Assembly: GCA_963514005.1 (NCBI GenBank)
Contig: OY740804.1
Location: forward strand, 5,828,001 to 5,892,000
Length of the DNA: 64,000 nt
DNA from: Raja brachyura
Lineage: Eukaryota
Direction of reading: 5' to 3'
Part shown: one piece after another, positions 1,510-63,382 of the stretch
How the letters are laid out: each line of letters opens with the position of its first letter
Numbering within the stretch: the first letter of the stretch is position 1
Translations under genes and position numbers: made by a program
Notes under the pieces: generated by a model
What the model was told of the DNA's origin: nothing
The model's input: only the letters and a program-made list of their open reading frames with translations
Databases searched by the model: none

Positions 1510-1556
1510 AATCCAAGTACAATGCATCACACGGTGAAGACAACAATGAAATCCAG
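1510..1556 (+). CDS. Penultimate cytoplasmic exon of upstream receptor gene (5' part lies outside the window)
   Basis: ttttccag acceptor and CAG|gtaaaa donor; 47 nt, phase 1 to 0; encodes (E)SKYNASHGEDNNEIQ; same sequence as 36371-36417. Confidence 0.75.
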
Positions 1557-10689: not shown

Positions 10690-10738
10690 ATGGACAAAAC
10701 AATGTGGATTCCCATTCTTCTCATCTCCTCGCTGCCCG
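10690..10738 (+). CDS. Gene A signal-peptide exon
   Basis: MDKTMWIPILLISSLP(V) followed by G|gtgagt, phase 1; continues in frame into VAGAVWAK. Confidence 0.85.
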
Positions 10739-13700
10739 GTGAGTGAAAGCCAGATCCTCATATTCCAATGATCAAAGTTATTTGGGGTCCCATGCACCCT
10801 TTCCACAGCAGAGATAGTTAAGTATGTGCAGAAATGGGGGAGATGCAACTCAGTGCGTTGTGGTGATGGATCTGAAATCACATTTGAATATCTAGACTGT
10901 GTTCGTAGTTTAACCATTGTTAACACGTGGTCTAATTGCATCCCGATTATAGTTTATAGGCATAAAATAGCAAATAAATTTGGAGCAGATACTCCAAGAT
11001 ACCTGGACCGAAGGACAGAAGATGCAACATCACCAGGAAGTTAATTCTACACTTTTAAAATGTGTTTACAAGAGAAGCGGGAGTCGGGATTGTGGACTCA
11101 TTGTGACAGTTCAAATATTCCCTGCATTTGTCCAATTCAACTCTGTCGTAAACCCAACAATTCCCCCGAGTCTGAGACTGAACCACTGTCCACGTTCTAT
11201 CCACCTCCCCCAACTCTCTCTCCATCCTCACTGGGATCCGCGGCCCAGTCGTGAAATTCAAGTTCAGTTTATTGTCACGTGTACCGAGGTACAGTGAAAA
11301 GCTTGTTGTTACGTGCTAACCAGCCAGATACATGATTACAATTGATCCTCTCACAGCCCATTGATACATGAAAGGCAAATAACGTTTAGTGTAAGGTAAA
11401 GCCAGCAAAATCCGATCAAGGGTAGTCCGAGGGTCACCAAATAGTTCGATCGTTCAGCACTGCTCTCTGCATGTGGTAGGATGATTCCGATGCCTGATAA
11501 CAGCTGGGAAGAAACTGTCCCCGAATCTGGCGGTGTGCATTTTCACGCTAGTAACGCTCTCCGGTAATGGACCCGCTTTATTGTAACTCGTTCGTCCTCT
11601 GTGTCCTCAGTCAGGGCGTTGTAAAGGCAGTGACGGCGGTGAATGTCTAAACACGGGTCCGGCTTTCCGCGCCAGGGTGGAACTAGAGAAGGACCAGGCG
11701 CTGTCCACGGGCACCTGGTGGATTTCCGGGACACCTGGGCACCGCCTGGGGTTGAATACATCCATGAGAAGTATTGTAACATAGTTGTATAGTAGTTTAT
11801 AGACTAGGGGAAAATAAATGGTCGGCACGGACTCGAAGGTCCGAGAAGGCCTGTTTCCGTGCTGTAATTGTTATATGGTTATATGGTTTATTTAGTATAT
11901 TTGTTTGTCGTATTATGGTGGTGGGTTCTGTTTTGTTTTATTGTATTGTAAATATTATTTTTAATAATTGAATAAATTATATGATAATTTAAAAAAATAC
12001 ACGGGTCCGGCCCAGTGTCGGTTGAGAGATGAATGTTGGCAGCGCAGCCGGCGGCACCGCCAATGAAATATCAAAGTGGGGTATTTCTGTAGGGTGAGAG
12101 GCCGGGCACCGCCTGGGATTGTTGAAACGCAGCTCTTGCTACACTGCCGCGCTCCCTCAGTACCGCACTGCGATCCCAGCCCAGTTTCTGCTCAGGGATC
12201 TAGAGTGGGAAGTGAACCCGCATTGTACTGACCCGGGGACAGAACACTGACACAATTGGTAGAATAACAGCACTGCCTGCACTTCAGACCGGAGACATTG
12301 GCCGAGAAGCAATATGACACATTATGGAACGTTTTAAGTTTTCTTTCATGTAATCTTCAAAATGTATCTATTACCATTAAACAGTTAATTTGCTCTCCAT
12401 CTGAAAGTTTCTCCGCTCAGTTGCAGGTGCAGTGTGGGCTAAGTGGGATGCAAGAGGAGTTGTTGGAAAAGCGATCACAATCGATTGTCACTATGCAGCA
12501 GAGTACCGCTCACACACAAAATACTGGTGCCGTGGGAGGAGTCGACCGTGTACAGTTTTAGTGGAAACAAATGGGCAACACGGACGGAATGGAAGAGTGT
12601 CAATCACAGATAATCCGACACGAGGAATATTTACTGTGACTGTGGAAGATCTTCACTCTGGAGATACGGGATGGTACAGCTGTGGGATTACAACATCTGC
12701 CGACCATCCAATATTTAACGTTTATCTCGAAGTATCTGACGGTAGGTTTCGCAGCGAAGAACGACGTATCCGGCAGAAAGATAATACATGATTACAATCG
12801 ATCCTCTTACAGTGCATAGATACAAGAAAAGGAAATTACGTTTAGTGTAAGGCAAAGCCAGCAAAATCCGATCAAGGGTCATCCGAGGGTCATCAAAGAG
12901 GTAGATAGGAGTTCAGCACTGCTCTCTGGATGTGGTAGGATGATTCAGATGCCTGATAACAGCTGTGAAAAAATTGTTCCCGAATCTGGCGGTGTGCGTT
13001 TTCACGCCAGTAACGCTCTCCGGTAAGGGACCTGGAAGCGGGTAGTGAGTGGGCGTGTGGTGAGTGGGTGAGTGATTGGGTGAGTGGGCAGATGCATGGC
13101 AGATGAAGTTTAATGTGGATAAATGTGAGGTTATCCACTTTAGTAGCAAAAACACGAAGGAAGATTATTATCTGAATGTTGTCAGGTTGGGAAAAGGGGA
13201 AGTACAAAGAGAGCTGGGGGTCCTTGTTCATCACTCACTGAAAGTATGCATGCAGCTGCAGCAGGCAGTGAAGAAAGCTAGTGCCATGTTTACCTTAATA
13301 ACAAGAGGAGTTGAATACAGGAGCAAAGCGGTCCTTCTCCAGTTGTACATGGCCCGAGTGAGACCACGCCTGGATTATTGTGTGCAGTTTTGAACTCCAA
13401 ATTTGAGGAAGGGCCTTCTTGCTATTGAGGGAGTGCAGCGTAGGTTCACAAGGTTTATTACCGGGATGGCGGGACTGTCATGTGTCCATTGAATGGAGCG
13501 GGTGCGCTTGAATACTCTGGAATTTAGAAGGATGAGATGGGATCTTATTGAAACATATAAGATTATTAAGGGATTGGACACGCTAGAGGCAGGAAACATT
13601 TTCCCGATATTGGGTGAGTCCGGAACCAGGGGCCACAGTTTAAGAATAATGGATAGGCCATTTAGAACGGAGATGAAGGAAAACCTTTTCACCCAGAGGG

Positions 13701-16700
13701 TTGTTCATCTGTGGAATTCAAAAGAAAGAACCATGCTGATGCATTCAAAAGAAGGATAGGTAGAGCTCTTTGGGCTAGCGGAATGAAGGGATATGGGGAA
13801 AGGCAGGAACGGGGTACTGATTTTGGATGATCAGCCATGATCACATTGAATGGCGGTGCTGGCTCGAAGGGCTGAACAGCCTACTGCACATATTGTCTAT
13901 GTATCTATGTATGTATCTACAGTTCCTTGTGTCTCCACCTCATCATATAGAAAAGCAAGGTCAATTAAAACTTGAGCAAGAGAACATTATACCGTGAGAA
14001 TAACTGGGCGCAGTGGTTTCCTCATGGTTGTTTTCGGTTGTTACTTTTGTATTTGAAGTGAACCCTGCTGATGTTAACGACTCAGGAATAGATTTAGGTT
14101 CTGTTGAGATAAAGACATAAAAGACAATTAAAGATAGAGAAAACACGCTGGATTAACTCCGCGAGACAGGCAGCATCTCTGGAGAGAAGGAATGGGTAAT
14201 GTTTCGGGTCTGAGGATGGGTCTCGAACCGAAACGTCAGAGAGAGAAAGAGTTAGATGGAGCTCTTAAAGATAGCGGCGCTTGAGGATATGGTGAGAAGG
14301 TAGGAACGGGGTACAGATTGGGAATGATCAGCCATGATCATAGTGAATGTCGGCGAAGTAGCAATAGCAAAGTTGGGTATTTCTGCAGGTGAGAGTCCGG
14401 GCACCGCCTGGGATTGTTGAAAGGCAGCTCATGCAACACTGCCGCGCTCCCTCAGTACCGCACTGCGATCCCAGCCCAGTTTCTGCTCAGGGAACTAGAG
14501 TGGGAAGTGAACCCTAATTGTACTGACCCGGGGACAGAACACTGACACATCTGGTACAATAACAGCACTGCCTGCACTTCAGACCGGAGACATTGGCCGT
14601 GAAGCAATATGACACATCATGGAACGATTTAAGTTTTCTTGCATGTAATCTTCAAAATGTTTCTATTTCCATTAAACAGTTCATTTCCCCTCCATCTGAA
14701 AGATTCTCTCCTCCATTTCAGGTGCAGTGTGGGGAGAGGCGGATGTAAGAGGAGTTGTGGGAAGAGCGATCACAATCGATTGTCACTATGCAGCAGAGTA
14801 CCGCTCACACACAAAATACTGGTGCCGTGTGCGGAGTCGCCAATGTACAGATATGGTGGAAACAAATGGGCAACACGGACGGAGTGGAAGAGTGTCAATC
14901 ACAGATAACCCGGCACGTGGAATATTTACTGTGACTGTGGAGGATCTTCACTCTGGAGATACAGGATGGCACAGGTGTGGAATTGCAACATCTAACGGCC
15001 GTCCAATGATAAACGTAGAACTCGAAGTATCTGACGGTATGTTTCGCAGCGATTGTCTTGTCGTCTCCACTGAAAAGCCTGATCCATGTTTTCTCCGGGA
15101 AGGGTCAGGGCAGCACCGATATCCCGAGGCTCCGCAGCAGTGCAGAGACCTGCGGGGAGCGGGCGGGGGTCCGGAAACCCCACTAATTTTGCTCTCACCC
15201 TATGTGGGCTCTGCCACACTGAGCGGCCACCCACTTAGAAACATGGAAACATAGAAAATAGGTTCAGGAGGAGGCCATTCGGCCCTTCGAGCCACCACCG
15301 CCATTCATTGCGATCATGGCTGACCGTCCCCAATCAATAACCCGTGCCTGCCTTCTCCCCATATCCCTTGATTCCACTAGCCCCTGGATGTCTATCTGAC
15401 TCTCTTTTAAATCCATCCAGTGATTTGGCCTCCACTGCCCTCTGTAAGCAGGGAATTCCACAAATTCACAACTCTCTGGGTGAAGACGTTTTTACTCACC
15501 TCAGTCTTAAATGGCCTCCCCTTTATTCTAAGACTGTGGTCACAGGTTCTGGACTCGTCCAACATTGGGAACATTTTTCCTGCATCTAGTTTGTCCAGTC
15601 CTTTTATAATTTTATATGTTTCTATAAGATTTCCCCCTCATCCTTCTGAACTCCAGTGAATACAGGCCTGGTCATTTCAATCTTACCTCATAAGAGAGTC
15701 GCGCCATCCCAGGGATCAATCTCGTGAACCTACGCTGCACGGCCTCAATCACAAGGATGTCCTTCCTCAGATTACACCAAAATTGTACTCAATGCTCCAG
15801 ATGTGGTCTTACCAGAGCCCGAAACAACTGCACAATAACCTCTCTACTCCAATACTGAAATCCTCTTGTTATGAAGGCCAACATTCCATTAGCTTTCTTC
15901 ACTGCCTGCTGTACCTGCACGCCAACTTTCAGTGGCTGGTGTACAAGGACACCCAGGTGTCGCTGTACCTCCCCCTTACCTAACCTAACCCCATTTAGAT
16001 AATAATCTGCCCCCTTCTTTTTGCCACCAAAGTGGATAACCTCACATTTATCTATATTATACTGCATCTGCCACGCATCTGCCCACTAACTCAACCTGTC
16101 CAGGTCACCCTGCAACCTCCTAACATCCTCTTCACAGTTCACACTGCCACCCCTCGTTGTGTCATCCGCAAACTTGCTAGTGTCGCTCCTGATTCCCTCT
16201 TCCAATTCATTAATATATATGGTAAACGGCTGCGGCCCCAACACCGAGCCTTACGGCACTCCACTCGCCACTGCCTGCCAATCTGAAAAGGACCCGTGCA
16301 CTCCGACTCTTTGCTTCCTGACGACCAACCAATTTTCTATCCAGGTCAACACCCTACCCCCAATACCATGCGCTTTAATTTTAGTCACCAGTCTCCCGTG
16401 TGGGACCTTATCAAAGGCTTTCTGAAAGGCTAGATCCACTACATCCACTGGCTCCCCTTCATCCATTTTACTTGTCACATCCTCAAAAAAATCCAGAAGA
16501 TATCAAGCATGATTTTCCGTTCATAAAATCATGCTGACTTGGACTAATCCTTTTACTGCTATCTAAATGCCTCATTATTATATCTTTAATGATTGACTCC
16601 AGCATCTTTCCCACCACCTAAGTCAGGCTAACAGGTCTGTAATTCCCCGTTTTCTCTCTCGCTCCTTTTTTGAAAAGTGGAATTTAACTTCACTTTCACT

Positions 16701-19700
16701 TCAAGTGGGATGCTCAGCACATTTCTCTTCTTCTGTACAGTATCAAATGTCACCCTATCAGAAGTTTGCATTCCGACTCAAACTAATAATCCGACAGTGA
16801 GAAACAAGCGTTGCTCGCGGTCTGAATACCCCAAGAGTTAAAAAAATCAGTCTCCAGATTGCGATCAGTCCTCCCGGAGTAGGCCATCCCGCTCCCCGCC
16901 CCCCACCTCAGGGATCAGTCACTCCCTCCCAAACCTCGGGCTCTCTCTCTCTCTCTCTCTCCCTCTGTCCCGTCAATGTGCCCCCACCCCCAGCAGCCAC
17001 TGTCCACCTACCGCCCGGCAGCCAGCCAGCCACTCCACCCGGACATTTCCCGGGTGGTAAGCAGAATAAACTAATCTTTCGCCCCATCAGCCGTCGCACC
17101 CAGCATATAATCCTTCGACATTTTCGCCACCTCCAACGGGATCCCACAAATGGCCACATATTTCCATCTCAAAGTCAAAGTCAAAGTCAAAAGAGTTTAT
17201 TGTCATGTGTCCCTGACAGGACAATGAAATTCTTTCTTTGCATAGCACAACACAACATAGTAGGCATTGACTACAATTATATATGTAAATACACACATGA
17301 ATTAATACATTAATAAAGTGCAAATAACATATGGAGGGATACACCGCTTTCCGAAGAGACCGCTCCCTCCGTAACTCCCTGGCCAAATCGTCCATCCTCC
17401 CCCCCCCCCCCCCCCCCCAATAAAAAACCCATCCCCTCCCCAGGTACATTCCCCGACAACTGCAGGAGATAGATCACCTGTCTGTATACCTCCTTCCTCT
17501 ACTCCGTCCAAGGACTCCAACAATCTTTTCGGGAGAGGGTTCGCTTGCATCTCCTCCAAGCTCACCTACTACATCCGCTGTTCCAGGTGTGAACTACTAT
17601 ATATCGGCGGAAACAAGCGCAGACTCGGCGATCGTTTCGCTGAATAACTGCGCTCAGTCAGCCTCGGCCGACGCTACTTCCCGATTGCTGAACACTTTCA
17701 TTCCCCCTCCCATTCCCAAACGCACCTTACTGTCCTGGACCTCATCCACTGTATGCCTCGTTGTCACTTTCCCTTCAGTCGACAATGATTCATTCTACAT
17801 TTTCTTTTCACCTTTGATCACTTGTTTTCACACCTTGCCTTTCCATTTATCTTCTGTCTCCCGTCCCATGACTCTCAGGCTGAAGAAGGGTCTCGACCCG
17901 AAACGTCACCCATTCATTCCTTCGATAGATTCTGCCTGCTCCGTTGCGTTACTCCAGCATTTTGTTTATATCTTAAACGGATCGTAAGTAGAGCAGAGAT
18001 GGTTAAGTGTGTGCATGCGTATAATGGGGGAAATAGAACTCAGTGCATTGTGGTGATGGATCTGAAATCACATTTGAACATCTAGGCAGTGTTCGTAGTT
18101 TAACCACTGTTGACACATGGTCTAATTGCACCCTGATGATAGTTGATCGGCATAAAATAGGGAATGAATTTGGATCAGATACTCCAAGACTCCTGGTCCG
18201 AAGGAGAGAGGTTCGAACGCCATCAGGAAGTTAATTCTACACTTTTAAAATGTGTTTACAACTGAGGTGGAAGTCAGGATTGTGGACTCATGATGGCAGT
18301 TCAAACATTCCCTGCATTGTCCAACTCAACTATGTCGCAAACCCAACAATTGAGACTGAACCACTGTCCTTGCTCTCTCCACCCACCCCCAACTCTCTCT
18401 CCATCCGCTCTCCGATCCGCGGACCAGTCGTGCAGAATTGTGAAGGGCGAGCCGGGGTCATTGGGAATAGAACCTGTCCATGATAAGCAGCGGAACATTG
18501 GGCTCCCAATTCAGTTTAGTTTATTGTCACGTGTACCGAGGTACAGTGAAAAGCTTTTATGTTGCGTACTAAGCAGAAAGACAATACATGATTACAATCG
18601 ATTCTCGTACAGTGCATAGATACATGAAAAGGAAATAACGTTTAGTGTAAGGTAAAGCCAGCAAAGTCCGATGAAGAGTAGTCCGATGGTCATCAAAGAT
18701 GTAGATAGGAGTTCAGCACCACTCTTTGGGTGTGTTAGGATGATTGAGATGCCTGATAACAGCTGGGGAAAAACTGTCCCCGAATCTGGCGTGGTGCAGC
18801 TCCTGCAACATTGCTGCGCTCCCTCAGCCCATAACTGCGATCCCAGCCCAGTTTCTGCTGAGGGATCTGGAGTGGGAAGTGAACCCGATTTGTACTGACC
18901 CAGGGACAGAACTCTGACACAACTGGTACAATAACAGCGCTGTCTGCACTTCAGACCGGAGACATTGTTCATGAAGCAATATGACACATCATGGAACGAT
19001 TTAGGTTTTCTTGCAAGTAATCTTCAAAATGTACCCATTTTCCATTAAACAGTTCATTTGCTCTCCATCTGAAAGTTTTCCCCCTCCATTTCAGTTGCAG
19101 TGTGGGGAGAGAGTAATGTAACAGGAGTTGTGGGAAGAGCGATCACAATCGATTGTCACTATGCACCAGAGTACCGCTCACACACAAAATACTGGTGCCG
19201 TGGGAGAAGTCGCCAATGTACAGATATGGTGGAAACAAATGGGCAACACGGACGGAGTGGAAGAGTGTCAATCACAGATATACAGGCACTAAGAATGTTT
19301 GGTGTGCGTGTGGAAGACCTTCACTCTGGAGATACAGGATGGTACAGCTGTGGGATTACAACATCTGCCGACCATTCAATGTTCCACGTATATCTCCAAG
19401 TATCTGATGGTACGTTTCGCAGCGATTGACGACGTCGCCACTGAAATAACCCTCCGACATTTTCGCAACCTACAACGGAATCCCACAAGTAGCCACATCT
19501 TTCCATCTCCACCGCTTTCTGCTTTCCGAAGAGACAGTTCCCTCCGCAATTCCCTGGTCAATTCGCTCTTTCCCACCCAAACCACCCCGTCCCCAGGTAC
19601 CTTCCCCTTCAACTACAGGAGATACAACACCTGTCCCTATATCACTCCCATCTACTCCGTCCAAGGGTCTCAACAGTCTTTTCGGGCGAGGCAGAGGGTC

Positions 19701-22700
19701 ACTTGCATCTCCTCCAACATCATCTACTATGTCTGCTGTTCCAGGTGTGAACAAGCGGATATAGTAGATGGGAGACCAAGCGCAGACTGGGCGATCCTTT
19801 CGCTGAACAACTCCGCTCACTCTGCCTCGGCCTTCGCCACTTCCCGATTGCTAAACACTTTTATTCCCCCTCTCATTCTTAAACTGATCTTTCTGTCCTG
19901 GACCTCCTCCAGTGTCAGAGTGAGGCCAAAGGCAAATTGTAGGAACAGCGCCTCATATTTCGCGTGGGCAGCTTACAACCCAGCGGTTTGAATATTGACT
20001 TCTCTAACTTCAGTAACCCTTGCTTTACTCCTGTCTCCATCCCGCCCCCAACCGAAGCCTCCAATTCGTTTCACTGGCTTCCTGATTATATTTTACTGAG
20101 TGTCTGCCTCGGTGTCACCTTCCCTTCAGCTGACAATGATCCATTCTACATTTTCCTTTAACATTGTCACCTTTGATCACTTGTTTTAACACCTTACCCT
20201 TCCATTTCTCTTCTGTCACCCCGAACATGACTGTCAGGCTGAAGAAATGTCTCGACCCGAAACTTCCCCCATTCATTCTCTCGAGAGATGTTGCCTGCTC
20301 CGCTGTGTTACTCCAGCATGTTGTGCCTATCCTAAAGGGATCGTGATTAGTTTTCGCGTTTAAATTTCAAAGCATTGGATAGGGTTATTGGCACGCTAGT
20401 CTTCATCAGTGAGAACATTCAGAACCTAATTTGCTTCAGATGTGCAGATGTTGAGTCCACACTTTGGGAATTGTGTTCAGCTTTCGTCCCTCAGCTCCAT
20501 GAAAACTGCCTTTGAGGTGGACGACATTGCCTGGACAGGATGGGATTGACGCAGGGAGCGATTGGACAAACTCAGACTACATTCCTGGGTGTGGAAATGA
20601 TTGAACGAGGAACTTACGGAAATGTATCAATCATGTGAAGCATATTCATTTTCCCACGATGTGTGGAATCAAAAAGTGGAGGACAGATGCAATGGGAACT
20701 ATTTAAAGAGGGGGTAATAGTACGGAGCCATTGACTGTAATGGCATGTTTTGCACAGATCAGTGACCGAAGCTGAACACAATTCGCCCAAGTTCGAACTC
20801 AATCACATAGGTACAACTGAAACAAAACATCCCAACTTATGTTCTGAGGGACAACATTTTCCACACATTGGGTAATATGCACATGGAACCTGTTGCCAGG
20901 GGGAAGTTGGTGAGGCACTAAGAATAACAGCATTTAAGATAAATGTTGGATATTTGCATAGATTGGGATCATTGCGAGTGATAAATGAGAAACGCGGATA
21001 TATGAAAATGCCCTCGAGAGACATGTTGGTCGGCATGAATGAGCTGTTGCGACGGGCATCTTTCGGTTCTCTATAACTCTAACCTTCTTCGGTTTCTGGG
21101 CTTCGCACACTCACAGAGATGTAGATGAGCCGATGAAATATCAACCGGAGGGTTCGGGCTGAGATAAAGGGCTGCTGAGATTTAGCATGTGTTTGGTTTT
21201 TAACTGTTCATACAGGTGACTGAATATTTGTTCCATTCCCACAGAACCCGTGTCTGCTCCTGTGCTCAGATATCTGTCACCAGCAAATACCTCACGTCTC
21301 GGAGGCTCAGTGTCAGTGTCGTGTGAGTCTGTCCGTGGATCCCTTCCCATCCAATACACATGGTTTGAGAAGAACGAGCATTGGGTTTCAACGATCTTGA
21401 AAAGCAAGCAACTGGATCTGAGTTGTGAAATCCTCAGAGGTGAACACCTTCAATATTACTGCACAGCCGCAAATAATCGTGGGACAAAATCCAGTGAAAT
21501 AGTCAAGGTGAAAGTCTTCAAAGGAGCAGGAACGTGCAGTTATGTGACTGAAATGAACAATGCAGGTGAGTGTCCCTCTCGTGCCCCTGAACCTGCTGCT
21601 ATTCACCTTGTGGCGATGTTTGTGGATTTCTTGTTATTTGCAGACGGCATCATTGCAGCCACCGTGAGCTCATGGTGTAAAATGCGAGAGTTTGTTTGGG
21701 GGACTGGCAAATAATTGCCTGTTGCTTTCACCTGGGAGGTGTTGAGCTTCGAAAGGAGAGAAAGGCCTGCACTTATCACAACGAGTTGAGTGCATTCCAT
21801 CAAAGTTCTGCCTTCTGCGTTAAAAATGATTTTCTGGCTGCCGCTTAAGGTCTCAGTCACTTTGAGACAGAGAAGGCAACCAACTTGATTCTGTTTGGAT
21901 CCACCATCATTTACATCCAAGGATGTACAATTTCATGATCATGTTCATGATTTTAACTCTGTTAATTGGTGTTAAACTCCAGTAATCTCACAAAATTAAA
22001 GTGGTATCTCCTTGACCGTCACTCCATCAAGAATAACCCTTACTTATGTCAAAGATAATTTTGAAATGAAACCCCATCCTCAACCTCCCCCGTTGATGCA
22101 GAGCAGCAGCAGTTAGCACCATCTGCACTATGCAATGCAGCAACTCACCAAGATTCGCAAGACATTCCCTTCCAATTGCAACAGGCTCCGTGTTCAATGC
22201 ATCATTCTTCACCATTCACACCCTCATTGGCTGGGAAGCGCTTTGGAATGACCTGTGTAGATGGTGAGGGACGGTGTACAGTATCTGTCTCTCATCGCAA
22301 TCTAAGTGGATTTCAACAGTTAAAAACATCATTAGGCGAACTCCCCTATGCACATTGATGCGTACTATAATGCACATATTTGTGAAAGGTTCATTTTGCT
22401 CTTCACTTTATGAAAGATTTCCCCTTCAGTTTCAGGAGCACTGTGGGCAGAGAGCGAAGTAAGCGGGGTTGTGGGAAGAGCGATCTCAATCGATTGTCAC
22501 TATGCAGCAGTGTACCGCTCACACACAAAATACTGGTGCCCTGGGACAAGTCGCCAGTGTACGCATGTAGTGGAAACAAACGGGAAACATGGACAGAGCG
22601 GAAGAGTGTCAATCACAGATAACCCGGCACGAGGAATATTTACTGTGACTGTGGAGGATCTTCACTCTGGTGATACAGGATGGTACAGCTGTGGAATTAC

Positions 22701-39785: not shown

Positions 39786-40095
39786 CTAATGTGGTTTGTT
39801 ATTTGATAGCACGGATTGAAATTTAACATTAGCGTAGTCGGCAAGATCTCGCTGGGACCATCGCTGATGACCGCGTAAGCAGCTGCAGTCTGGATGGGAC
39901 CTTGAGGAGAGTAAAAAGTGTACTATCGGATCCATTGAGTCTGAACTCCCGAACGAATTCCCGGGAAACCGTGGTCCCTCGTCTGAGGTTGATCTGGTTC
40001 CCTTCCGAGATCCACAAGAATCAGAGGTAAGAGAAACATCGTTATAATAGTCAAAGGGTAGGTTAATTGAACATTCAGACTCAGAAGAGTGGGGT
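39786..40095 (-). pseudogene. Second copy of orphan YxN-bearing terminal exon
   Basis: Acceptor ttaatttacacag on - strand; frame open to stop; paralog of 4918-5227. Confidence 0.4.
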
Positions 40096-43355: not shown

Positions 43356-43733
43356 AGGGCCTGTCACACTAGCGCGCGATTAGACGCGACAAGCGCGACC
43401 TACCGTGGTCGCTTTAGTCGTCCGGCCTCGCGTGACCCTGTCCCACTGCGATCGCCGGAGTCTCGTGGAGTTGCGCGGACTCGTGTGTAGCTGGTGTCGA
43501 CATCGCGCGTAGTGTCCAAAAACCGACACTGCTTAAAAATTACGCGCGGCAAAATCCTGTCGCGCGGAACGTGATGACGTTTTGACGTTGTGCGTCTTCA
43601 GCGTGGCGTTGCGTGATGACGTCACTGCCCGACGTCGTGCAACGCGCATGCTCATGCGCATCGTCACGTGATGAAAATAACGTCCTTCCTTCGGACGTCG
43701 CGCGTGTAATCGCGCGCTAGTGTGACAGGCCCT
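43356..43733. mobile_element. PIF/Harbinger-type MITE, copy 2 only
   Basis: 27-bp perfect TIR AGGGCCTGTCACACTAGCGCGCGATTA; TTA target-site duplication (43353-43355, 43734-43736); empty site at ~8346. Confidence 0.9.
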
Positions 43734-46101: not shown

Positions 46102-46150
46102 ATGGACAAAACAACGTGGATTCCCATTCTTCTCATCTCCTCGCTGCCCG
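46102..46150 (+). CDS. Gene B signal-peptide exon
   Basis: MDKTTWIPILLISSLP, G|gtgagt donor; the second ATG of gene A is ACG here. Confidence 0.8.
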
Positions 46151-52100: not shown

Positions 52101-55100
52101 TCCTTCGACATTTTCGCCACCTCCAACGGGATCCCACAAATGGCCACATATTTCCATCTCAAAGTCAAAGTCAAAGTCAAAAGAGTTTATTGTCATGTGT
52201 CCCTGACAGGACAATGAAATTCTTTCTTTGCATAGCACAACACAACATAGTAGGCATTGACTACAATTATATACGTAAATACACACATGAATTAATACAT
52301 TAATAAAGTGCAAATAACATATGGAGGGATACACCGCTTTCCGAAGAGACCGCTCCCTCCGTAACTCCCTGGCCAAATCGTCCATCCTCCCCCCCCCCCC
52401 CCCCCCCCCCAATAAAAAACCCATCCCCTCCCCAGGTACATTCCCCGACAACTGCAGGAGATAGATCACCTGTCTGTATACCTCCTTCCTCTACTCCGTC
52501 CAAGGACTCCAACAATCTTTTCGGGAGAGGGTTCGCTTGCATCTCCTCCAAGCTCACCTACTACATCCGCTGTTCCAGGTGTGAACTACTATATATCGGC
52601 GGAAACAAGCGCAGACTCGGCGATCGTTTCGCTGAATAACTGCGCTCAGTCAGCCTCGGCCGACGCTACTTCCCGATTGCTGAACACTTTCATTCCCCCT
52701 CCCATTCCCAAACGCACCTTACTGTCCTGGACCTCATCCACTGTATGCCTCGTTGTCACTTTCCCTTCAGTCGACAATGATTCATTCTACATTTTCTTTT
52801 CACCTTTGATCACTTGTTTTCACACCTTGCCTTTCCATTTATCTTCTGTCTCCCGTCCCATGACTCTCAGGCTGAAGAAGGGTCTCGACCCGAAACGTCA
52901 CCCATTCATTCCTTCGATAGATTCTGCCTGCTCCGTTGCGTTACTCCAGCATTTTGTTTATATCTTAAACGGATCGTAAGTAGAGCAGAGATGGTTAAGT
53001 GTGTGCATGCGTATAATGGGGGAAATGGAACTCAGTGCATTGTGGTGATGGATCTGAAATCACATTTGAACATCTAGGCAGTGTTCGTAGTTTAACCACT
53101 GTTGACACATGGTCTAATTGCACCCTGATGATAGTTGATCGGCATAAAATAGGGAATGAATTTGGATCAGATACTCCAAGACTCCTGGTCCGAAGGAGAG
53201 AGGTTCGAACGCCATCAGGAAGTTAATTCTACACTTTTAAAATGTGTTTACAACTGAGGTGGAAGTCAGGATTGTGGACTCATGATGGCAGTTCAAACAT
53301 TCCCTGCATTGTCCAACTCAACTATGTCGCAAACCCAACAATTGAGACTGAACCACTGTCCTTGCTCTCTCCACCCACCCCCAACTCTCTCTCCATCCGC
53401 TCTCCGATCCGCGGACCAGTCGTGCAGAATTGTGAAGGGCGAGCCGGGGTCATTGGGAATAGAACCTGTCCATGATAAGCAGCGGAACATTGGGCTCCCA
53501 ATTCAGTTTAGTTTATTGTCACGTGTACCGAGGTACAGTGAAAAGCTTTTATGTTGCGTACTAAGCAGAAAGACAATACATGATTACAATCGATTCTCGT
53601 ACAGTGCATAGATACATGAAAAGGAAATAACGTTTAGTGTAAGGTAAAGCCAGCAAAGTCCGATGAAGAGTAGTCCGATGGTCATCAAAGATGTAGATAG
53701 GAGTTCAGCACCACTCTTTGGGTGTGTTAGGATGATTGAGATGCCTGATAACAGCTGGGGAAAAACTGTCCCCGAATCTGGCGTGGTGCAGCTCCTGCAA
53801 CATTGCTGCGCTCCCTCAGCCCATAACTGCGATCCCAGCCCAGTTTCTGCTGAGGGATCTGGAGTGGGAAGTGAACCCGATTTGTACTGACCCAGGGACA
53901 GAACTCTGACACAACTGGTACAATAACAGCGCTGTCTGCACTTCAGACCGGAGACATTGTTCATGAAGCAATATGACACATCATGGAACGATTTAGGTTT
54001 TCTTGCAAGTAATCTTCAAAATGTACCCATTTTCCATTAAACAGTTCATTTGCTCTCCATCTGAAAGTTTTCCCCCTCCATTTCAGTTGCAGTGTGGGGA
54101 GAGAGTAATGTAACAGGCGTTGTGGGAAGAGCGATCACAATCGACTGTCACTATGCAGCAGAGTACCGCTCACACACAAAATACTGGTGCCGTGGGAGAA
54201 GTCGCCAATGTACAGATATGGTGGAAACAAATGGGCAACACGGACGGAGTGGAAGAGTGTCAATCACAGATATGCAAGCACTAAGAATATTTGGTGTGCG
54301 TGTGGAAGACCTTCACTCTGGAGATACAGGATGGTACAGCTGTGGGATTACAACATCTGCCGACCATTCAATGTTCCACGTATATCTCCAAGTATCTGAT
54401 GGTACGTTTCGCAGCGATTGACGACGTCGCCACTGAAATAATCCTCCGACATTTTCGCAACCTACAACGGAATCCCACAAGTAGCCACATCTTTCCATCT
54501 CCACCGCTTTCTGCTTTCCGAAGACACAGTTCCCTCCGCAACTCCCTGGTCAACTCGCCCTATCCCACCCAAACCACCCCGTCCCCAGGTACCTTCCCCT
54601 TCAACTGCAGGAGATACAACACCTGTCCCTATATCTCCCCCATCTACTCTGTCCAAGGGTCTCAACAGTCTTTTCGGGCAAGGCAGAGGTTCACTTGCAT
54701 CTCCTCTAACATCATCTACTATATCTGCTGTTCCAGGTGGTGACAAGCGGATATAGTAGATGGGAGACCAAGCGCAGACTCGGCGATCCTTTAGCTGAAC
54801 AACTCCGCTCACTCTGCCTCGGCCTTCGCCACTTCCCGATTGCTGAACATTTTTATTCCCCCTCCCATTCATAAACTGATCTTTCTGTCCTGGACCTCCT
54901 CCAGTGTCAGAGTAGGCCAAAGGCAAATTGTAGGAACAGCGCCTCATATTTCGCGTGGGCAGCTTACAACCCAGCGGTTTGAATATTGACTTCTCTAACT
55001 TAAGTAACCCTTGCTTTACTCCTGTCTCCATCCCGCCCCCAACCGATGCCTCCAATTAGTTTCACTGGTTTCCTGATTATATTTTACTGAGTGTCTGCCT

Positions 55101-58100
55101 CGGTGTCACCTTCCCTTCAGCTGACAATGATCCAGTCTACATTTTCCTTTAACATTGTCACCTTTGATCACTTGTTTTAACACCTTACCCTTCCATTTCT
55201 CTTCTGTCACCCCGAACATGACTGCCAGGCTGAAGAAAGGTCTCGACCCGAAACGTCCCCCATTCATTCTCTCGAGAGATGTTGCCTGCTCCGCGGTGTT
55301 ACCCCAGCATGTTGTGTCTATCTTAAAGGGATCGTGATTAGTTTTTGCGTTTAAATTTCAAAGCATTGGATAGGGTTATTGGCACGCTAGTCTTCATCAG
55401 TGAGAACATTCAGAACCTAATTTGGGACAATATGCTTCAGATGTGCAGATGTTGAGTCCACAATTTGGGAATTGTGTTCAGCTTTAGTCCCTCGGCTCCA
55501 TGAAAATTGCCTTTGAGGTGGACGACATTGCCTCGACAGGATGGGATTGACGCAGGGAGCGATTGGACAAACTCAGACTACATTCCTGGGTGTGGAAATG
55601 ATTGAACGAGGAACTTACGGAAATGCATCAATCATGTGAAGCATGTTCATTTTCCCACGATGTGTGGAATCACAAAGTGGAGGACAGACGCAATGGGAAC
55701 TATTTAAAGAGGGGGGAATAGTAAGGAGGCATTGACCTTAATGGCATGTTTTGTACAGATGAGTGGCCGAAGCTGAACACGATTCGCCCAAGTTTGAACT
55801 CAATCACATAGGTACAACTGAAACAAAACATCCCAACTTATCTTCTGAGGGACAACATTTTCCACACATTGGGTAATATGCACATGGAACCTGCTGCCAG
55901 AGGGAAGTTGTTGAGGCATTAAGAATAACAGCATTTAAAATAAGTGTTGGATATTTGCGTAGATTGGGATCATTGCGAGTGATAAATGAGAAACGAGGAT
56001 ATATGGAAATGCCCTCGAGAGACATGTTGGTCGGCATGAATGAGCTGTTGTGATGGGCATCTTTCGGTTCTCTATAACTCTAACCTTCTTCGGTTTCTGG
56101 GCTTCGCACACTCACAGAGATGTAGATGAGCCGGTGAGATATCAACCGGACGGTTCGGGCTGAGATAAAGGGCTGCTGAAATTTAGCATGTGTTTGGTTT
56201 TTAACTGTTCATACAGGTGACTGAATGTTTGTTCCATTCCCACAGAACCCGTGTCTGCTCCTGTGCTCAGATATCTGTCACCAGCAAATGCCTCACGTCT
56301 CGGAGGCTCAGTGTCAGTGTCGTGTGAGTCTGTCCGTGGATCCCTTCCCATCCAATACACATGGTTTGAGAAGAACGAGCATTGGGTTTCAACGATCTTG
56401 AAAAGCAAGCAACTGGATCTGAGTTGTGAAATCCTCAGAGGTGAACACCTTCAATATTACTGCACAGCCGCAAATAATCGTGGGACAAAATCCAGTGAAA
56501 TAGTCAAGGTGAAAGTCTTCAAAGGAGCAGGAACGTGCAGTTATGTGACAGAAATGAACAATGCAGGTGAGTGTTCCTCTCGTGCCTCTGAACCTGCTGC
56601 TATTCACCTTGTGGTGATGTTTGTGGATTTCTTGTTATTTGCAGACGGCATCATTGCAGCCACCGTGAGCTCATGGTGTAAAATGCGGGAGTTTGTTTGG
56701 GCAACTGGCAAATAATTGCCTGTTGCTTTCACCTGGGAGGTGTTGAGCTTCGAAAGGAGAGAAAGGCCTGCACTTATCACAACGGGTTGAGTGCATTCCA
56801 TCACAGTTCTGCCTTCTGCGTTAAAAATGATTTTCTGGCTGCCGCTTAAGGTCTCAGTCACTTTGAGACAGAGAAAGCACCCAAATTGATTCTGTTTGGA
56901 TCCACCATCATTACAACCAAGGATGTACAATTTCATGATCATGTTCATGATTTTAACTCTGTTAATTTGTGTTAAACTCCAGTAATCTCACAAAATTAAA
57001 TTGGCATCTCCTTGACCGTCACTCCATCAAGTATAATCCTTACTTGTGTCAAAAATAATTTTGAAATTAACCTGGAGTATTGCGTACAGTTTTGGTCTCC
57101 AAATCTGAGGAAAGACATTTCTTGCCATAGAGGGCGTACAGAGAAGATTCACCAGACTGATTCCTGGGATGTCAGGACTTTCATGTGAGGAAAGACTGGA
57201 TAGGCTTGGCTTGTACTCTCTGGAATTTAGAAGACTGAGGGGGGATCTTATAGAAATGTACAAAATTCTTAAGGGGTTGGACAAGCTGGATGCTGGAAGA
57301 TTGTTCCCGATGTTGGGGGAGTCCAGAACAAGGGGTCACAGTCTAAGGATAAGGGGGAATTCCTTTAGGACTGAGATGAGGAAAACATTATTTACACAGA
57401 GAGTGGTGAGTCTCTGAAATTCTCTGCCACAGAAGGTAGTTAAGGCCAGTTCATTGGCTATATTTAAGAGGCCGTTAGATGTGGCACTTGTGGCTAAAGG
57501 GATCAGGGGGTATGGAGAGAAGGCAGGTACGGGATACTGAGTTGGATGATCAGCCATGATCACATTGAATGGCGGTGCAAGCTCGAAGGGCCGAATGGCC
57601 TACTTCTGCACCTATTTTTCTACGTTTTTTCCTATGTTCTAAATGAAACTCCCAGTAAGTGTGGAGACGTTCAGATTGGAACTGGAAGACAGTGTGAATG
57701 GTTTACACCAGAGAGACCAAGCTTATACAAGGCCAGTGCTTCTTAAACTATTTCAGTGTAATTCACCCTTGAGTCTTTATTACACGATTTAATTCACCCT
57801 CCACTAAATGTTCTTATGTTTTTTTGGTTATTATCATCTTATTTTCCCTTGTGCATAATTTTATATATAATTTATTTTGACCCTTGAGCAAAAAACATGA
57901 ATTAACTCATTAATCCCAAAATAATTTCATTCACACTTGGATGAATCATTTTAAGACGCGCTGGCCTAGGCTGCAATTTTGCTGGACACTTGTGCTTGGT
58001 CCATCATGACCCAGAATCGTGCTTGATAGACACCCCATCCTCAACCTCCTCCGTTGATGCAGAGCAGCAGCAGTTCGCACCATCTGCACGATACACTGCA

Positions 58101-61100
58101 GCAACTCACCAAGATTCGCAAGACATTCCCTTCCAATTGCAACAGGCATTCAATGAATCACTCTTCACCATTCACACTCTCATTGGTTGGGAAGCGCTTT
58201 GGAACGACCTGTGCAGATGGTGAGGGACGGTGTACAGTATCTGTCTCTCATCGCAATCTAAGTGGAATTCAACAGTTAAGAACATCATTGGGCGGACTCC
58301 CCTATGCACATTGATGTATACTATAATGCATATGTTTGTGAAAGGCTAATTTTGCTCTTCACTTTATGAAAGATTTTTCCTTCAGTTTCAGGTGCATTGT
58401 GGGCTGAGAGCGAAGTAAGCGGGGTTGTGGGAAGAGTGATCACAATCGATTGTCGCTATGCAGCAGTGTACCGCTCACACACAAAATACTGGTGCCCTGG
58501 GACAAGTCGCAAGTGTACACATATAGTGGAAACAAATGGGAAACATGGACAGAGCGGAAGGGTGTCAATCACAGATAACCCAGCACGAGGAATATTTACT
58601 GTGACTGTGGAGGATCTTCACTCTGGAGATACAGGATGGTACATTTGTGGAATTACTACACCTGGCGAACCAACATTTAATGTACATCTCCAAGTATCTG
58701 AAGGTAGGTTTCTCAGTGAGTGACTTCATGTCTCGATTTTTCATTTGCATAAAACATGTGTTTGGTCAAATATGGGAGTCTGGAGCAATGTTCTGGTCGC
58801 CACTTTATAAAACAAAAGATGTGAAAGGTTTGGAGAAGTTGCAGAAAAGGTTCACCGGGATATTTAGTTGTAGTTTACAAATGCAACATGGAAACGGATC
58901 CTTTGGCCCACCGAGTCCACACCGACTAGCGATCACCGGTCACACTAGTTCTATGTTATTCCACTTTCCCAGTCGCCCCCTGCACACAAATTTACAATAC
59001 CACCATTCACACACCTCATTAGTGCAACATTATCACTATCAACAATTTTATACAAGGAAATTAAAACGTTGTTGATAGTGATAATGTTGCACTAATGAGG
59101 TGTTTGAATGTTGGTATTGTAGAATTGTGGCAGAGTTTCAGATTAAAAGAAGATTAACTGCAGATGCTGGAATTGCCAAACAAAGACAGATGGTGCTGCT
59201 GTGTACTGGTACAGTGTCAGACATGGTAGTGCTGGCAGCTGGGAGGATGGAGAGACACTGAGATGTTCAAATCTGGTAAATTGTGAGGAGAAGGAGCAGA
59301 GAAGACTTACAAGGATGTTGCGATGACTTGAGGGCCTGACATACAGGGAGTGGCTGAGCAGATTAGGACTTTGTTTCTTGGAGCGCAGGAGGATGAGGGA
59401 AGATCTTATGGCAGGTAAAAAATCATGCGAGGAATAGATCGATTAAACACACAGAGTCTTTTGCCCAGAGTAGGGGAATCGAGAACTGGAGGACAACGTT
59501 TTAATATGAGGGGGGAATAATTTGACAGGAACCTGGGGAGTAACGTTTTTACATAAAGGTTGGTAGGTACATTAAACGAATTGCCGACAGAAGTAGTTAT
59601 GGCAGGTACTATCGTAATATTTACGAAAATATTCAGGTACCTGAATAGGATACGTTTAGAGGGTTAAGGGCGAAGAAAGCGCAGGTGGAACTAGTGTAGA
59701 TTGGGCATGTTGGCAGCGCGGGCAAGTTAGACCGAATGGCCTGTTTCTACGCTGTATGACTATGATTTTATGTAGATGGATGGGTCAGATTCCAACCTGG
59801 CGGCTCTGGCTAAGATATGGTGGATATTGGCGAATGTTTGATTTTCAGATGATTGATTTTCCGCTCCTTTCCCACAGAACCCGTGTCTGTTCCTGTGCTT
59901 GGATTCCTTTCACCAGCAATGTCTCCTGTCTCGGGGGCTCAGTGACAGTGTCCTGTGAGTCGGTCAGTGGATCCCTTCCCATTAGCTACATCTGGTATGA
60001 AAAGACCCCATCTGGGAATTCAAAGATCTCAGACCAAAATGCCCTGGAACTACATTGTCAATCCTTCAGACACCAGCATCATCAATATTATTGCACAGCC
60101 TCAAATAATAATGGAACAAAATCCAGTGAAATAGCCAACATGTCCATCTCCAGCAGTGACGTATCCTGCAGTTTTCTAGTGAAAACCAACGGCACTGGTA
60201 AGTAGTGGAAGGAATGTGGAGAAGAAGGGGAAGTGGGGGTGGAGTGGTTCATAAGATCACATGTGATAGAAGCTGAAATAGACAATACAATCATGGCTGA
60301 TCTATCTTCCGCTCTTCACCCCATGGTCCTGCCTTCTCCCCAAAGCCCAGACACCATGAAATCCATGCACATTATTTAATTAACATCAATATTAAAATGA
60401 TGGAATTATGGTTCATTTGTCAATACTTGGTTGCTCGGTCCAGAAATAGATTTTCCAGTGCTGATGTCGGCCAGCTTCCTGGCTAGAACAACCGCTTATG
60501 TTTACACAGCTTTTATCTCGATTTGTAGTGACATCAGTCCAAGCACATACACTTTCCCACCACCATCTCCACATAATCCACACTCAGATATGGTAAGGGA
60601 ATGAATATTAGCAGTAAATGTGGCCACAGTTAACTCCTGGATGACGGTATCAGATTTGGTCCACTGTGTTAATGTTGACCATTCTGTACCATCGATACTA
60701 ATCCCATTTACCAGCACCTCGTCCATTCTGGCAATTCAGATACCTCCAGCTTCTAGATTTTAAATATTTATTGAGATCCTTGAAACATCCTGCTCCTGAA
60801 CTTAACCCTGTCGTATCCACTTTTACACATATCTGCCATGCAAAATGTTCCAGAAATACCCTATCTATGCTGCTCACAGTTTTGCACACTTGTAATAGGT
60901 TCTCGCTTCATCACCTGCTCTCCATGGACTTTTATAAAACCCCTATCCAGCCCCTCCCCATCACTGTAATGTTGCATCTGAAGCAATACTCCTCTCGAGT
61001 GAAATTGGACCCTTTTGATTGGTGTATGGATATATCGTGGACTCTTCTGCCCACTGAGTAAACGTCCAGTAATCACCAGTACACTAGTTCCATGGGGAAC

Positions 61101-63382
61101 TAGTAAATAGTTCAATGGGGACAATTTACAGAAGCCAATTAAGCAACGAACTTGCACGACTTCAGATTGCGGGGGAAACTGGAACGCTTGGAGAAAACCC
61201 ACACGTTCACAGGGATGAGGTACAAATACGATACAGACGGCTTCCGGAGTCGGGATCGAACCCGTGCCTCTGGCGCTGAAATGCAGAAACTCTACCTCGG
61301 CGCCACCGTCCCGTACTCGCCTGCTAGTCATGATAACATTTTCCATTTGCTGCAAATCACACTGGAGAAGCATTGCCCTGTCTGTTAAGCCTATCAACTC
61401 CTTACATCGGACACCCAAACTCTCTTGTTCAACTGCAAGTGAAAAGCAGTGAAACTTACTTTTATTTCCTTATTTCCAACAGGTCTTGAATATTCTTGTG
61501 AAAATTCGATAACATCCAATTACTCTGCAAGGTAAACCACTCTGTTTCCAATTAAAGTTACAATGTACTAATTGCTGGTGTTTTGATTGGGAATGCTTTA
61601 ATTGGGGGATAGTTGTGCCTTCCTTTCGCTGGCATTGAATGGCGTGAGTATTGATCTGAATGCACAGTGACACAGCCTGTAGAATTACAGCCTCCGAACG
61701 CACGACCCTGGTTCATTGGGTGTTGTCCAAGTGTGGTCTGCATGTTTTCCCTTTAATTGTGTTGGTTTGATTTAAGTGTCCCAGTTTCCTCCCAGATCCC
61801 AAAGAGAGTTGTAAGTAGTAAATTGCCCCGTGAGTACAGGAAAGCGGGTGAATCTGTGGATAGGGGGTATGTGGGTGGGCGGCGGGAGGGGGATATGAGA
61901 ACATTAATACCGCCGATATGAGCCAACCTCTAACCGAAATTTCGAGCACGATTCTTTCATCCACACACCTACCGCGTTAATCCAAGTAATATCGAGGATG
62001 TGGTATTGAGCATTATAATTTTTTATTGATTTCATTAATTGGCCTCATCTGTTTCCATATTTATTGTCCCACCTGCTTTCCACTGTTAGAATTGATCCTT
62101 TTTTATTATTCCTGTCTATCCATATGGATTTTATTATAATCTTCCTTGCAGCTGCATTTTCTTTCTTTCAGGGTATTACACAGTTCTTTGTATCCTTCCA
62201 CATCCCCAGTTTCTCTCTCCCGTGACTCCCAGTCTGAATAAGGTTCTCGACCCGAAACGTCACCCACGCTGCCTTTCCCGCTCTGTTTCTCCAGCATTTT
62301 GTGTCTATCCACTCTGTATTCACTGTATTCACTGCTCCATCTCATGACTTATTTCTCTGTCTTCTCCGAATCCATTTAACCGTGTAATCTCTCATTCCCA
62401 GTCTTGTAGCCATGCTCCAGCAATGAGGTCAGTAATTGGTGATCATGAGTTGTCCCCCCACCCCCTAGTCCAACACACGTTCTCTCTCCAAACTGATCTC
62501 CATTGACGCTGCTGCTTCGCCCAGACACACTTCATCAAGATTATGAAGCAAATAACAAGTAAATGTTTCAAAGATAAACCGTCTCGTTTCCTCCCATTGA
62601 TTCTGTATCTCTTGCCCTTTGCCCAGTTACATCTCATGGAAAGTGGGGCGCTGGCTGTTCTTTTTCCTGCTTGTGATCTGGAGTATCTCAAACGTGGTGA
62701 TCACAAGAGGCTCTAAGGTAGGTTTTATTGTCATCATGTTCGTAAATTATATGAGCAGAATTGGGGCATTGAGCCCATCATATCTAATCCGCCCCCAATC
62801 ACGGCTGATCTACCCTTCACTCTCGAATCAATTTTCCTGCCTTCTCGCCATAACGCTTGACATCCTTATTTCTCAAGAATATGAAAATCTCCGCCTTAAA
62901 AATATCAATTGATTTGGACATGCAAAATTGCTGAAGTAGCTCGGCGGGACAGGCAGCATCTCCGGTGTGAATTGACTTGGCCTCCACAGGCTCTTGTGGT
63001 AATGAAATCCATAGATTCACCACCCTCTAACCAAAACAATCACTTCTCATCACCTAATGTATCCAAACGATTTCCATTAATGCTTTCGAATATCCTGTCC
63101 ATTGATAGAAACAAAAACCATGCACGTTTTCATATCCTGAAATTAAACCAAACCTCTATGTAGATGATATCACAAGGTGTTTTCAGGTTGTACGTGTGCA
63201 GGGTGGATTTCTGTGCCCGGTGTGGATTCATTGGGGTCCATATTCCAGACAGCAGTGTATTGGGAGTGGCCGTGTCAAATAAAGCGTGCTTCTCACTGTC
63301 AATGAATCTGATGACTTCACATTGTCTTTTGCAGAGACGGGATGAGTCAGAACCTCGCCACTCGGCCCATGAATTACAATGA
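46102..63382 (+). CDS. Gene B: activating-type paralog, L-V-V-V-C2-V-C2(frameshifted)-stalk-charged TM-short tail
   Basis: Exons 46102-46150, 47409-47729, 49710-50024, 54087-54401, 56246-56566, 58386-58703, 59878-60197, 61483-61531, 62627-62717, 63335-63382; phases compatible except for the 320-nt C2b exon. Confidence 0.7.
47409..47729 (+). CDS. Gene B Ig V domain 1
   Basis: Paralog of 12421-12741 with 8 aa differences; splice sites intact. Confidence 0.88.
48981..49088 (-). pseudogene. Second copy of inverted orphan stalk exon
   Basis: Same peptide and splice signals as 13993-14100. Confidence 0.55.
49710..50024 (+). CDS. Gene B Ig V domain 2
   Basis: Protein identical to gene A V2. Confidence 0.88.
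54087..54401 (+). CDS. Gene B Ig V domain 3
   Basis: 3 aa differences from gene A V3. Confidence 0.88.
56246..56566 (+). CDS. Gene B Ig C2-type domain a
   Basis: 1 aa difference from gene A C2a. Confidence 0.88.
57072..57640 (+). mobile_element. Young CR1 3' fragment of the same family as the full-length element; gene B only
   Basis: MSGLSCEERLDRLGLYSLEFRRLRGDL... closely matches the ORF2 C-terminus; absent at ~22065 in copy 1. Confidence 0.9.
58386..58703 (+). CDS. Gene B Ig V domain 4
   Basis: ttccttcag acceptor, G|gtaggt donor; open frame. Confidence 0.88.
59878..60197 (+). pseudogene. Gene B Ig C2-type domain b with 1-nt deletion
   Basis: CCA GC- AAT vs gene A CCA GCC AAT (~59917); exon is 320 nt; premature TGA at 59943-59945. 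Confidence 0.75.
61483..61531 (+). CDS. Gene B stalk exon
   Basis: GLEYSCENSITSNYSA; same length (49 nt) and splice sites as the gene A stalk exon. Confidence 0.75.
62627..62717 (+). CDS. Gene B transmembrane exon with basic residues
   Basis: ccctttgcccag acceptor, AAG|gtaggt donor; phase 2 to 0; SYISWKVGRWLFFFLLVIWSISNVVITRGSK. Confidence 0.75.
63335..63382 (+). CDS. Gene B short terminal cytoplasmic exon without tyrosine
   Basis: gtcttttgcag acceptor, phase 0; RRDESEPRHSAHELQ*; AATAAA at 63767-63772. Confidence 0.6.
   Translation, partial: RRDESEPRHSAHELQ

Follow-up and report, generated by a model that had tools for sequence, protein, structure and literature searches.

In the present study, a 64,000-nt stretch of the genome of Raja brachyura (assembly GCA_963514005.1, contig OY740804.1, positions 5,828,001-5,892,000 of the forward strand; hereafter the window) was analysed, in which an initial annotation had described an adjacent pair of inhibitory and activating receptor genes at 10690-63382. 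The window probably holds part of a tandem array of MDIR (modular domain immune-type receptor) genes, which encode receptors built of V and C2 immunoglobulin (Ig) domains. In this array, gene A would be an inhibitory receptor gene of the MDIR3 type and gene B would join a shared ectodomain to an MDIR5-type 3' end, an arrangement that we attribute to duplication and gene conversion, with paired signalling as its putative function. First, genes A and B lie in tandem on the + strand with matching exon layouts and with starts 35.4 kb apart (gene A spans 10690-37110 and gene B spans 46102-63382; Table 1). Gene A consists of 11 exons with AG/GT borders at all of them, consistent phases and an open coding sequence of 2382 nt, as determined by phase arithmetic and per-exon translation, and its predicted product has 793 aa. 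Gene B consists of 10 exons, also with AG/GT borders and consistent phases, and its start codon, splice sites and all exons except the second C2 exon (C2b) are intact. Every Ig exon of both genes has a polypyrimidine/AG acceptor, a G/GT donor and phase 1.

Second, the 5' halves of the two genes are nearly the same. The leaders differ by one residue (M5T), V2 has 0/315 nt differences and C2a differs by a single nucleotide and a single residue, in agreement with the sharing of leader and Ig exons already described. With 8, 3 and 6 aa differences in V1, V3 and V4, respectively, the Ig exons from V1 to V4 are 92-100% identical at the aa level; the nonsynonymous:synonymous codon changes in these three exons (8:5, 3:3 and 6:7) are too few for inference. 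The stalk exons had also been listed as shared, and they are indeed homologous, although not nearly identical: about 81% of aligned bases agree (an approximate value from a slightly offset alignment), as do 10/16 aa read from the exons, and the two stalks are of different types, MDIR3-like in gene A and MDIR5-like in gene B.

Third, the 3' ends of the two genes are unrelated. Colinear DNA homology ends at 30344/61765, beyond which the transmembrane (TM) and tail exons of A and B are without DNA similarity, and neither a homologue of the B TM exon in the introns of A nor a homologue of the A TM or tail after the B stalk was found. The tail exon of gene A reads ITYAVV, VVYADV and TIYASV. The first two match the immunoreceptor tyrosine-based inhibitory motif (ITIM) pattern (S/I/V/L)xYxx(I/V/L), and the third matches TxYxx(V/I), the pattern of an immunoreceptor tyrosine-based switch motif (ITSM). 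Gene B instead encodes the TM segment S-YISWKVGRWLFFFLLVIWSISNVVITRGSK and a short tail, RRDESEPRHSAHELQ, without tyrosine; the exon for this TM segment follows a good acceptor (ctttgcccag), is entered in the phase 2 that the stalk demands, and leaves in phase 0 through the donor AAG/GTAGGT. These non-homologous TM and tail exons, their coordinates and the motifs read in them are as the initial annotation had reported. The exons of gene A predict an intact inhibitory receptor of the MDIR3 type.

Family identity of genes A and B

The four V exons match the Pfam V-set family (E 1e-11 to 1e-13), and the C2a and C2b exons match the Pfam families Ig_C17orf99, Ig_2 and Ig_3. Among solved structures (PDB), V1 was closest to pIgR (E 4e-54, summed over domains), followed by CD300f (7e-19), CD300a, NKp44, TREM2 and the Fc-mu receptor, and C2a was closest to FCRL5 (1e-41), followed by CD22 and FCRL4. 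A full HMMER scan with V1 returned 2738 relatives, the best of which were NCBI models from skates, rays and sharks, most of them under the name 'polymeric immunoglobulin receptor-like', a label that holds at the domain level only. When the best inhibitory relative served as the query of a word search, MDIR3 (P0166) and MDIR5 (P0186) of the clearnose skate (Rostroraja eglanteria) were recovered, and a later search recovered MDIR2; with the C-terminal region of MDIR5 alone, the word search yielded two candidates and was uninformative.

MDIR3 (701 aa) comprises a leader, V-V-C2-V-C2, GLEYSCVTSKRSKYSS, ITYIFVSGVTVLLLILIIAFFWYRKRKTK, GSNCNTSHGEENNEIQ and a tail with ITYAVV, VVYADV and IYASVVS. In a tblastn comparison of MDIR3 with the window, every exon of gene A was matched at 67-100% identity except the 16-aa stalk, for which there was no match and whose likeness to the MDIR3 stalk was judged by eye only. 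MDIR3 and gene A are alike in the leader (16/16 aa), the domain types, the chain of stalk, TM, cytoplasmic and tail segments and the tail itself (79% identity), and they differ in that MDIR3 has V-V-C2-V-C2 whereas gene A has V-V-V-C2-V-C2, i.e. one more tandem V. MDIR5 (501 aa) ends in GHEYSCENPITSSYSA, SYISWKVGRWLLFLLLVIWSISTAVFTRGSK and KRDESEPRHSAHELQ, to which the B stalk, TM and tail show 81, 84 and 87.5% aa identity, respectively (tblastn). Both MDIR5 and gene B have the SYISWKVGRWL... TM segment and the ...SEPRHSAHELQ end, whereas the Ig part of MDIR5 is V-C2-V-C2 and that of gene B comprises six exons, of which C2b is frameshifted in the assembly. The records of MDIR3 and MDIR5 are presumably cDNA-derived; if so, the chain from C2b through stalk and TM to the tail is spliced in this way in a related skate.

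This exon-by-exon agreement adds the locus to the known MDIR family as a new genomic member, not as a new kind of system, and its earlier assignment to a chondrichthyan MDIR-family locus is upheld for gene A as a whole and for the 3' end of gene B. The original description of the family, as cited in PMC3031540, is that of Cannon et al. 2006 (Immunogenetics 58:362; PMID 16738934). The V-V-V-C2-V-C2 layout, regarded as unfamiliar in the initial annotation, is by its domain order a minor variant within a family defined by modularity. Among 224 typed relatives, the order V-V-C-V-C was found six times, V-V-V-C once and V-V-V-C-V-C zero times. V1, V2 and V3 are tandem copies of an intron-plus-V unit (12067-12757 is 90% identical to 14363-15052 and 87% identical to 18796-19435), and thus the extra V relative to MDIR3 amounts to a simple local duplication.

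Two other identities were rejected. pIgR has V domains only (four or five), a long tail with transcytosis signals and a single-copy gene, whereas in the present locus V alternates with C2, the tail is of ITIM type or has 15 aa, and the gene is multicopy and tandem. CD300 has one V on a mucin-like stalk, as opposed to six Ig exons. Neither pIgR nor CD300 alternates V with FCRL-type C2 or has the TM and tail of A or B. In other words, the comparison proposed earlier with MDIR, CD300 and pIgR yields a match to MDIR over the exon chain and, for pIgR and CD300, a likeness at the domain level only.

Several observations concern relatives of these genes. The TM segment of gene A carries an outer-edge Arg at 34299-34310 (IFASRVTV); the residue is Gly in MDIR3 and in other inhibitory relatives (VSGVTV), and the change is lineage-specific. 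The models of Leucoraja erinacea (P0004, XP_055511094.1) and Amblyraja radiata (P0005, XP_032898097.1) end in VTSHGKWGAGC(F/S)FSCL; both models skip the 49-nt stalk exon (phase 1 to 2) and so translate the RW-type TM exon out of frame, apparently a systematic error in the annotation of MDIR5-type genes. In Rhinoraja longicauda, a 760-aa model named 'E3 ubiquitin-protein ligase TRIM69-like' (P0053) joins TRIM/RING sequence to C2-V-C2 and to a TM and tail of the RW type; two genes have probably been fused in this model, which suggests that a TRIM gene adjoins an MDIR gene in that species.

Reading frame and putative signalling role of gene B

The C2b exon of gene B has 320 nt compared with 321 nt in gene A, one C being missing behind 59916 (CACCAG-CAATG compared with CACCAGCCAATG). 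With the conserved acceptor, the frame reaches a TGA at 59943, tblastn breaks the exon into two frames at 59915/59918, and, reasoning from the sequence, there is no AG nearby that could act as an alternative phase-1 acceptor and rescue the frame. The near-identical six-Ig ectodomain attributed to both genes in the initial annotation therefore holds as an exon layout and fails for gene B as assembled, the frameshift having been overlooked. Skipping of C2b would keep the frame, giving an open coding sequence of 1788 nt with the order V-V-V-C2-V-stalk-TM-tail, and relatives with a V directly before a B-type TM exist (P0168, P0006 and P0013).

To evaluate the missing base, contigs of four DNA runs (X1, X2, X3 and X5; three samples, two organism labels) were aligned to 58300-63400. 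A contig at least 95% identical to gene B and with a C inserted behind 59916 was present in all four runs. In X1 and X3, from the probable source sample, this contig accounts for the entire depth at the site (27.6 of 27.6 and 21.4 of 21.4), and in X2 and X5 it occurs at single-copy depth (8.62 of 37.7 and 7.7 of 28.7). The depth at 59916 in X1 and X3 is approximately four times the 5-8 observed over B-unique sequence, so the contig may sum several B-like paralogues and would then be unassignable to B; contigs, moreover, drop minority branches. The contigs are thus compatible with an error in the consensus, with a true frameshift that is either very recent or polymorphic, or with signal from a paralogue. 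Over the B TM (62575-62745) and stalk (61378-61548), contig depth was 3-10 times the flanking single-copy depth in all four runs, which implies that the genome carries several almost identical 3' ends of the MDIR5 type.

The strongest rival explanation, which we consider unlikely although it deserves attention, is that gene B is a recently dead pseudogene with a real deletion in C2b, a stop at 59943 and degraded transcripts, while gene A and other nearby MDIR5-type genes remain functional. The deletion and the stop are present in the assembly, large immune receptor arrays commonly hold pseudogenes, and the approximately fourfold single-copy depth over TM and C2b means that other B-like copies could carry the function. 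However, every other exon and splice site and the start codon are intact, and the conserved ...LGFLSPA and NVSCLGGSVTVSC... are still read on the two sides of the break. The C-containing contig was found in all four runs, no contig with the deletion was seen in X1 or X3, and the in-frame skipping of C2b, with its V-before-TM counterparts in relatives, offers gene B a coding alternative.

If gene B is expressed, its putative signalling would depend on the TM segment. The outer edge of this segment reads W-K-V-G-R-W, with a hydrophobic core of 17 residues after the Arg. The B-type TM was observed in 48/269 retrieved relatives, from skates, stingrays, sawfish, mantas, several shark orders and two sturgeons. 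A pattern that did not require Arg nevertheless had Arg before Trp in 49/49 matches, with K, S, D or T at the neighbouring +1 position, and the tails of the carriers are short and, in all but two, without ITIM-like motifs. The two sturgeon pIgR-like proteins (P0100 and P0144; Acipenser) have the W-x-x-x-R-W-I-L-F motif as in MDIR5-type receptors, which shows that the B-type TM is not restricted to chondrichthyans. Receptors coupled to FcR-gamma, among them Fc-alpha-RI, LILRA, PIR-A and GPVI, carry an N-proximal TM Arg, and the placement of the Arg in B resembles theirs. The invariant Arg supports, although it does not prove, a plausible activating role of gene B, which the initial annotation had overstated.

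It is rather improbable, in our estimation, that gene B and MDIR5-type genes generally are non-signalling or decoy forms that compete with gene A for ligand, with the Arg acting as an interface anchor. The Arg and the variable Lys do lie at the outer boundary of the hydrophobic core, MDIR5 was reportedly not classed as activating in the original MDIR paper, and adaptor pairing of B is putative only. Nevertheless, the Arg is invariant from sharks to sturgeon while its neighbours vary, its placement is like that in FcR-gamma-coupled receptors, and the short tyrosine-free tail is conserved.

Several points weigh against the interpretation of A and B as a paired set homogenised by conversion. As assembled, gene B encodes no six-Ig ectodomain. 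The Arg is placed only some 3 residues into the predicted span, a position from which it might do no more than snorkel, and the abstract of the original description is said to list MDIR5 among the forms without characteristic activating or inhibitory motifs. The nearly identical tract between A and B described below could in principle be an assembly effect of a multicopy region. Finally, no RNA sequencing runs containing the stretch were found, so that in this species the exon chains of A and B are predictions.

Duplication and probable gene conversion in the array

Self-comparison revealed a tandem segmental duplication with a period of approximately 35 kb within the window, where the order is the 3' end of an upstream gene, Z, followed by gene A and gene B. 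The third copy of the ITIM tail exon, which belongs to gene Z, makes the locus a repeat array, not just a pair; the adjacent inhibitory/activating layout proposed in the initial annotation is retained, and its restriction to two genes is not. The 3' ends of Z and A are 96-99% identical across the first 6 kb of the window. Between A and B, identity is 95-97% in the promoter and leader region, 93-96% around V1, 99.8-100% over 13380-19100 (with 5 differences in 4058 in intron 3), 95-98% up to C2a, 88-96% from V4 to C2b and 73-82% in the next intron and stalk, where sensitive alignment extends the colinearity to 28951-30344/60385-61765; beyond 30344/61765 there is none. This stepped profile, together with the likeness of the Z and A 3' ends, fits either unequal crossing-over or a segmental duplication that ran from the middle of one gene to the middle of another. 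The tract of 5.7 kb at 99.8-100%, in a background of 95-96%, indicates a recent gene conversion between A and B, if the tract is faithfully assembled.

Independent contigs cover the 3' part of gene B and cross the break at 61765 (X1 record 6 covers 61650-62060 with 0 differences, and X2 record 14 covers 61427-62129), and these independent data therefore confirm the boundary between shared and B-specific sequence as real. That A and B are uncollapsed haplotypes or an assembly duplication, the possibility by which the initial annotation would have been overturned, is very improbable: high identity in the 5' half, the 5.7 kb tract and the proneness of multicopy regions to misassembly would favour it, whereas the sequence is contiguous with zero N runs, background divergence is 4-8% with many indels, a long interspersed nuclear element (LINE) of 4.5 kb is private to A and an insert of 0.96 kb to B, the non-homologous 3' ends each match a different published record (MDIR3 or MDIR5), a third repeat unit lies upstream, and contigs of other samples cross the 61765 break.

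Table 1. Exons of genes A and B, repeat blocks and other features of the window (aa, identity at the amino acid level where stated)
Feature	Position	Strand	Remarks
A leader	10690-10738	+	MDKTMWIPILLISSLP; phase 1 out; 100% match to MDIR3 N-terminus
A V1	12427-12741	+	CD300/pIgR-type V-set
A V2	14722-15036	+	same as B V2
A V3	19095-19409	+	V-set
A C2a	21245-21538	+	FCRL-type C2
A V4	22436-22747	+	89% aa to membrane-proximal V of MDIR3
A C2b	23928-24248	+	321 nt, open
A stalk	30060-30108	+	49 nt; phase 1 to 2; GLEHSCETSKRTNYSS; MDIR3-type
A TM	34287-34375	+	LTYIFASRVTVFLLILIIAFCWYRKRKSK; phase 2 in
A cytoplasmic exon	36371-36417	+	ESKYNASHGEDNNEIQ
A tail	36835-37110	+	two ITIMs, one ITSM-like motif, stop
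B leader	46102-46150	+	MDKTTWIPILLISSLP
B V1	47415-47729	+	V-set
B V2	49710-50024	+	same as A V2
B V3	54087-54401	+	V-set
B C2a	56246-56539	+	C2
B V4	58392-58703	+	V-set
B C2b	59878-60197	+	320 nt; frameshift, TGA 59943-59945
B stalk	61483-61531	+	49 nt; phase 1 to 2; GLEYSCENSITSNYSA; MDIR5-type
B TM	62627-62717	+	84% aa to MDIR5
B tail	63335-63382	+	after tttgcag; 15 aa, stop; 87.5% aa to MDIR5
Repeat block	1-5960 = 34863-40854		identity 96-99%
Repeat block	8346-10905 = 43734-46317		identity ~96%
Repeat block	11890-22067 = 46900-57067		identity 97.6% overall
Repeat block	22061-24434 = 58023-60384		identity 92%
Candidate gene-conversion tract, 5.7 kb	13380-19100 = 48370-54090		99.8-100% vs 95-96% background; covers V2 and intron 3
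ITIM tail exon of upstream gene Z	1974-2249	+	4 aa off A tail; marks previous repeat unit
CR1-like LINE, antisense in A intron between C2b and stalk	24441-28950	-	not in B
B-specific insertion (CR1 3' fragment), 0.96 kb	57067-58023		where A/B identity drops from ~96-98% to 92-95%

Other features of the window were also observed. The CR1-like LINE at 24441-28950 has both open reading frames (ORFs) open (ORF1, 331 aa at 27552-28547; ORF2, 1024 aa at 24538-27612) and is missing from gene B, which marks it as a young, possibly active element. Older CR1 fragments lie at 13076-13928, 15236-16680, 32130-33031 and 57067-57627. Both repeat units also carry, in the intergenic region that separates an ITIM tail from the following leader, a copy of a block (8709-9518/44104-44907) with long overlapping ORFs of up to 269 aa on both strands and with frequent Gly, Pro, Arg and Ser in the translations; this block may be either a repeat or a CpG-island-like element.

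Proposed explanation and comparison with known systems

Herein, we propose that a segmental duplication of approximately 35 kb, or unequal crossing-over, placed one promoter, leader and Ig 5' half on two older and diverged 3' ends, one of the MDIR3 type and the other of the MDIR5 type. A later gene-conversion tract of approximately 5.7 kb would mean that the A and B copies are still homogenised. The two proteins would see the same ligand. Gene A would recruit SH2 phosphatases through its phosphorylated ITIMs, and signalling by gene B might run through an adaptor of the FcR-gamma/DAP12 kind, which carries an immunoreceptor tyrosine-based activation motif and whose Asp would pair with the TM Arg. 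Given its frameshift as assembled, gene B could have become a pseudogene very recently, could be expressed as a five-Ig form through skipping of C2b, or could have been misread in the consensus.

More tentatively, and with somewhat more doubt than conviction, we extend this proposal to the family. MDIR3-type and MDIR5-type genes might form a true inhibitory/activating pair, with ectodomains kept alike by conversion, and the W-x-V-x-R-W TM might be an ancient adaptor-coupling module. Since this TM is common to pIgR/CD300-like receptors of sharks, rays and sturgeon, the module would predate the split of cartilaginous and bony fish. If this is true, MDIR5, reportedly classed as without signalling motifs, would be the activating arm. 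Owing to the conserved TM Arg, such a role of MDIR5-type genes can be put to the test.

Vertebrate innate immunity has arrived at paired receptors time and again, and their presence, genomic layout and mode of homogenisation in the oldest jawed vertebrates, of which the skate locus is a probable example, bear on how early such logic arose. The locus also provides a clean genomic example for the MDIR family, otherwise represented by protein records of the clearnose skate and by automatic gene models, in which the 49-nt stalk exon is missed. In a single window, it displays a shared promoter and ectodomain, an identity gradient pointing to unequal crossing-over, a fresh candidate conversion tract and two 3' ends. 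Genes A and B differ from the mammalian and avian paired receptors PIR-A/B, LILRA/B, KIR, CD300a/c and CHIR in having other Ig domain types and no orthology with them, and the adaptor coupling of B is only putative. In organisation they are alike: in all of these systems, adjacent genes have near-identical ectodomains, an ITIM-bearing partner is set against a short-tailed partner with a basic TM residue, and the genes are, or in the case of A and B probably are, homogenised by gene conversion.

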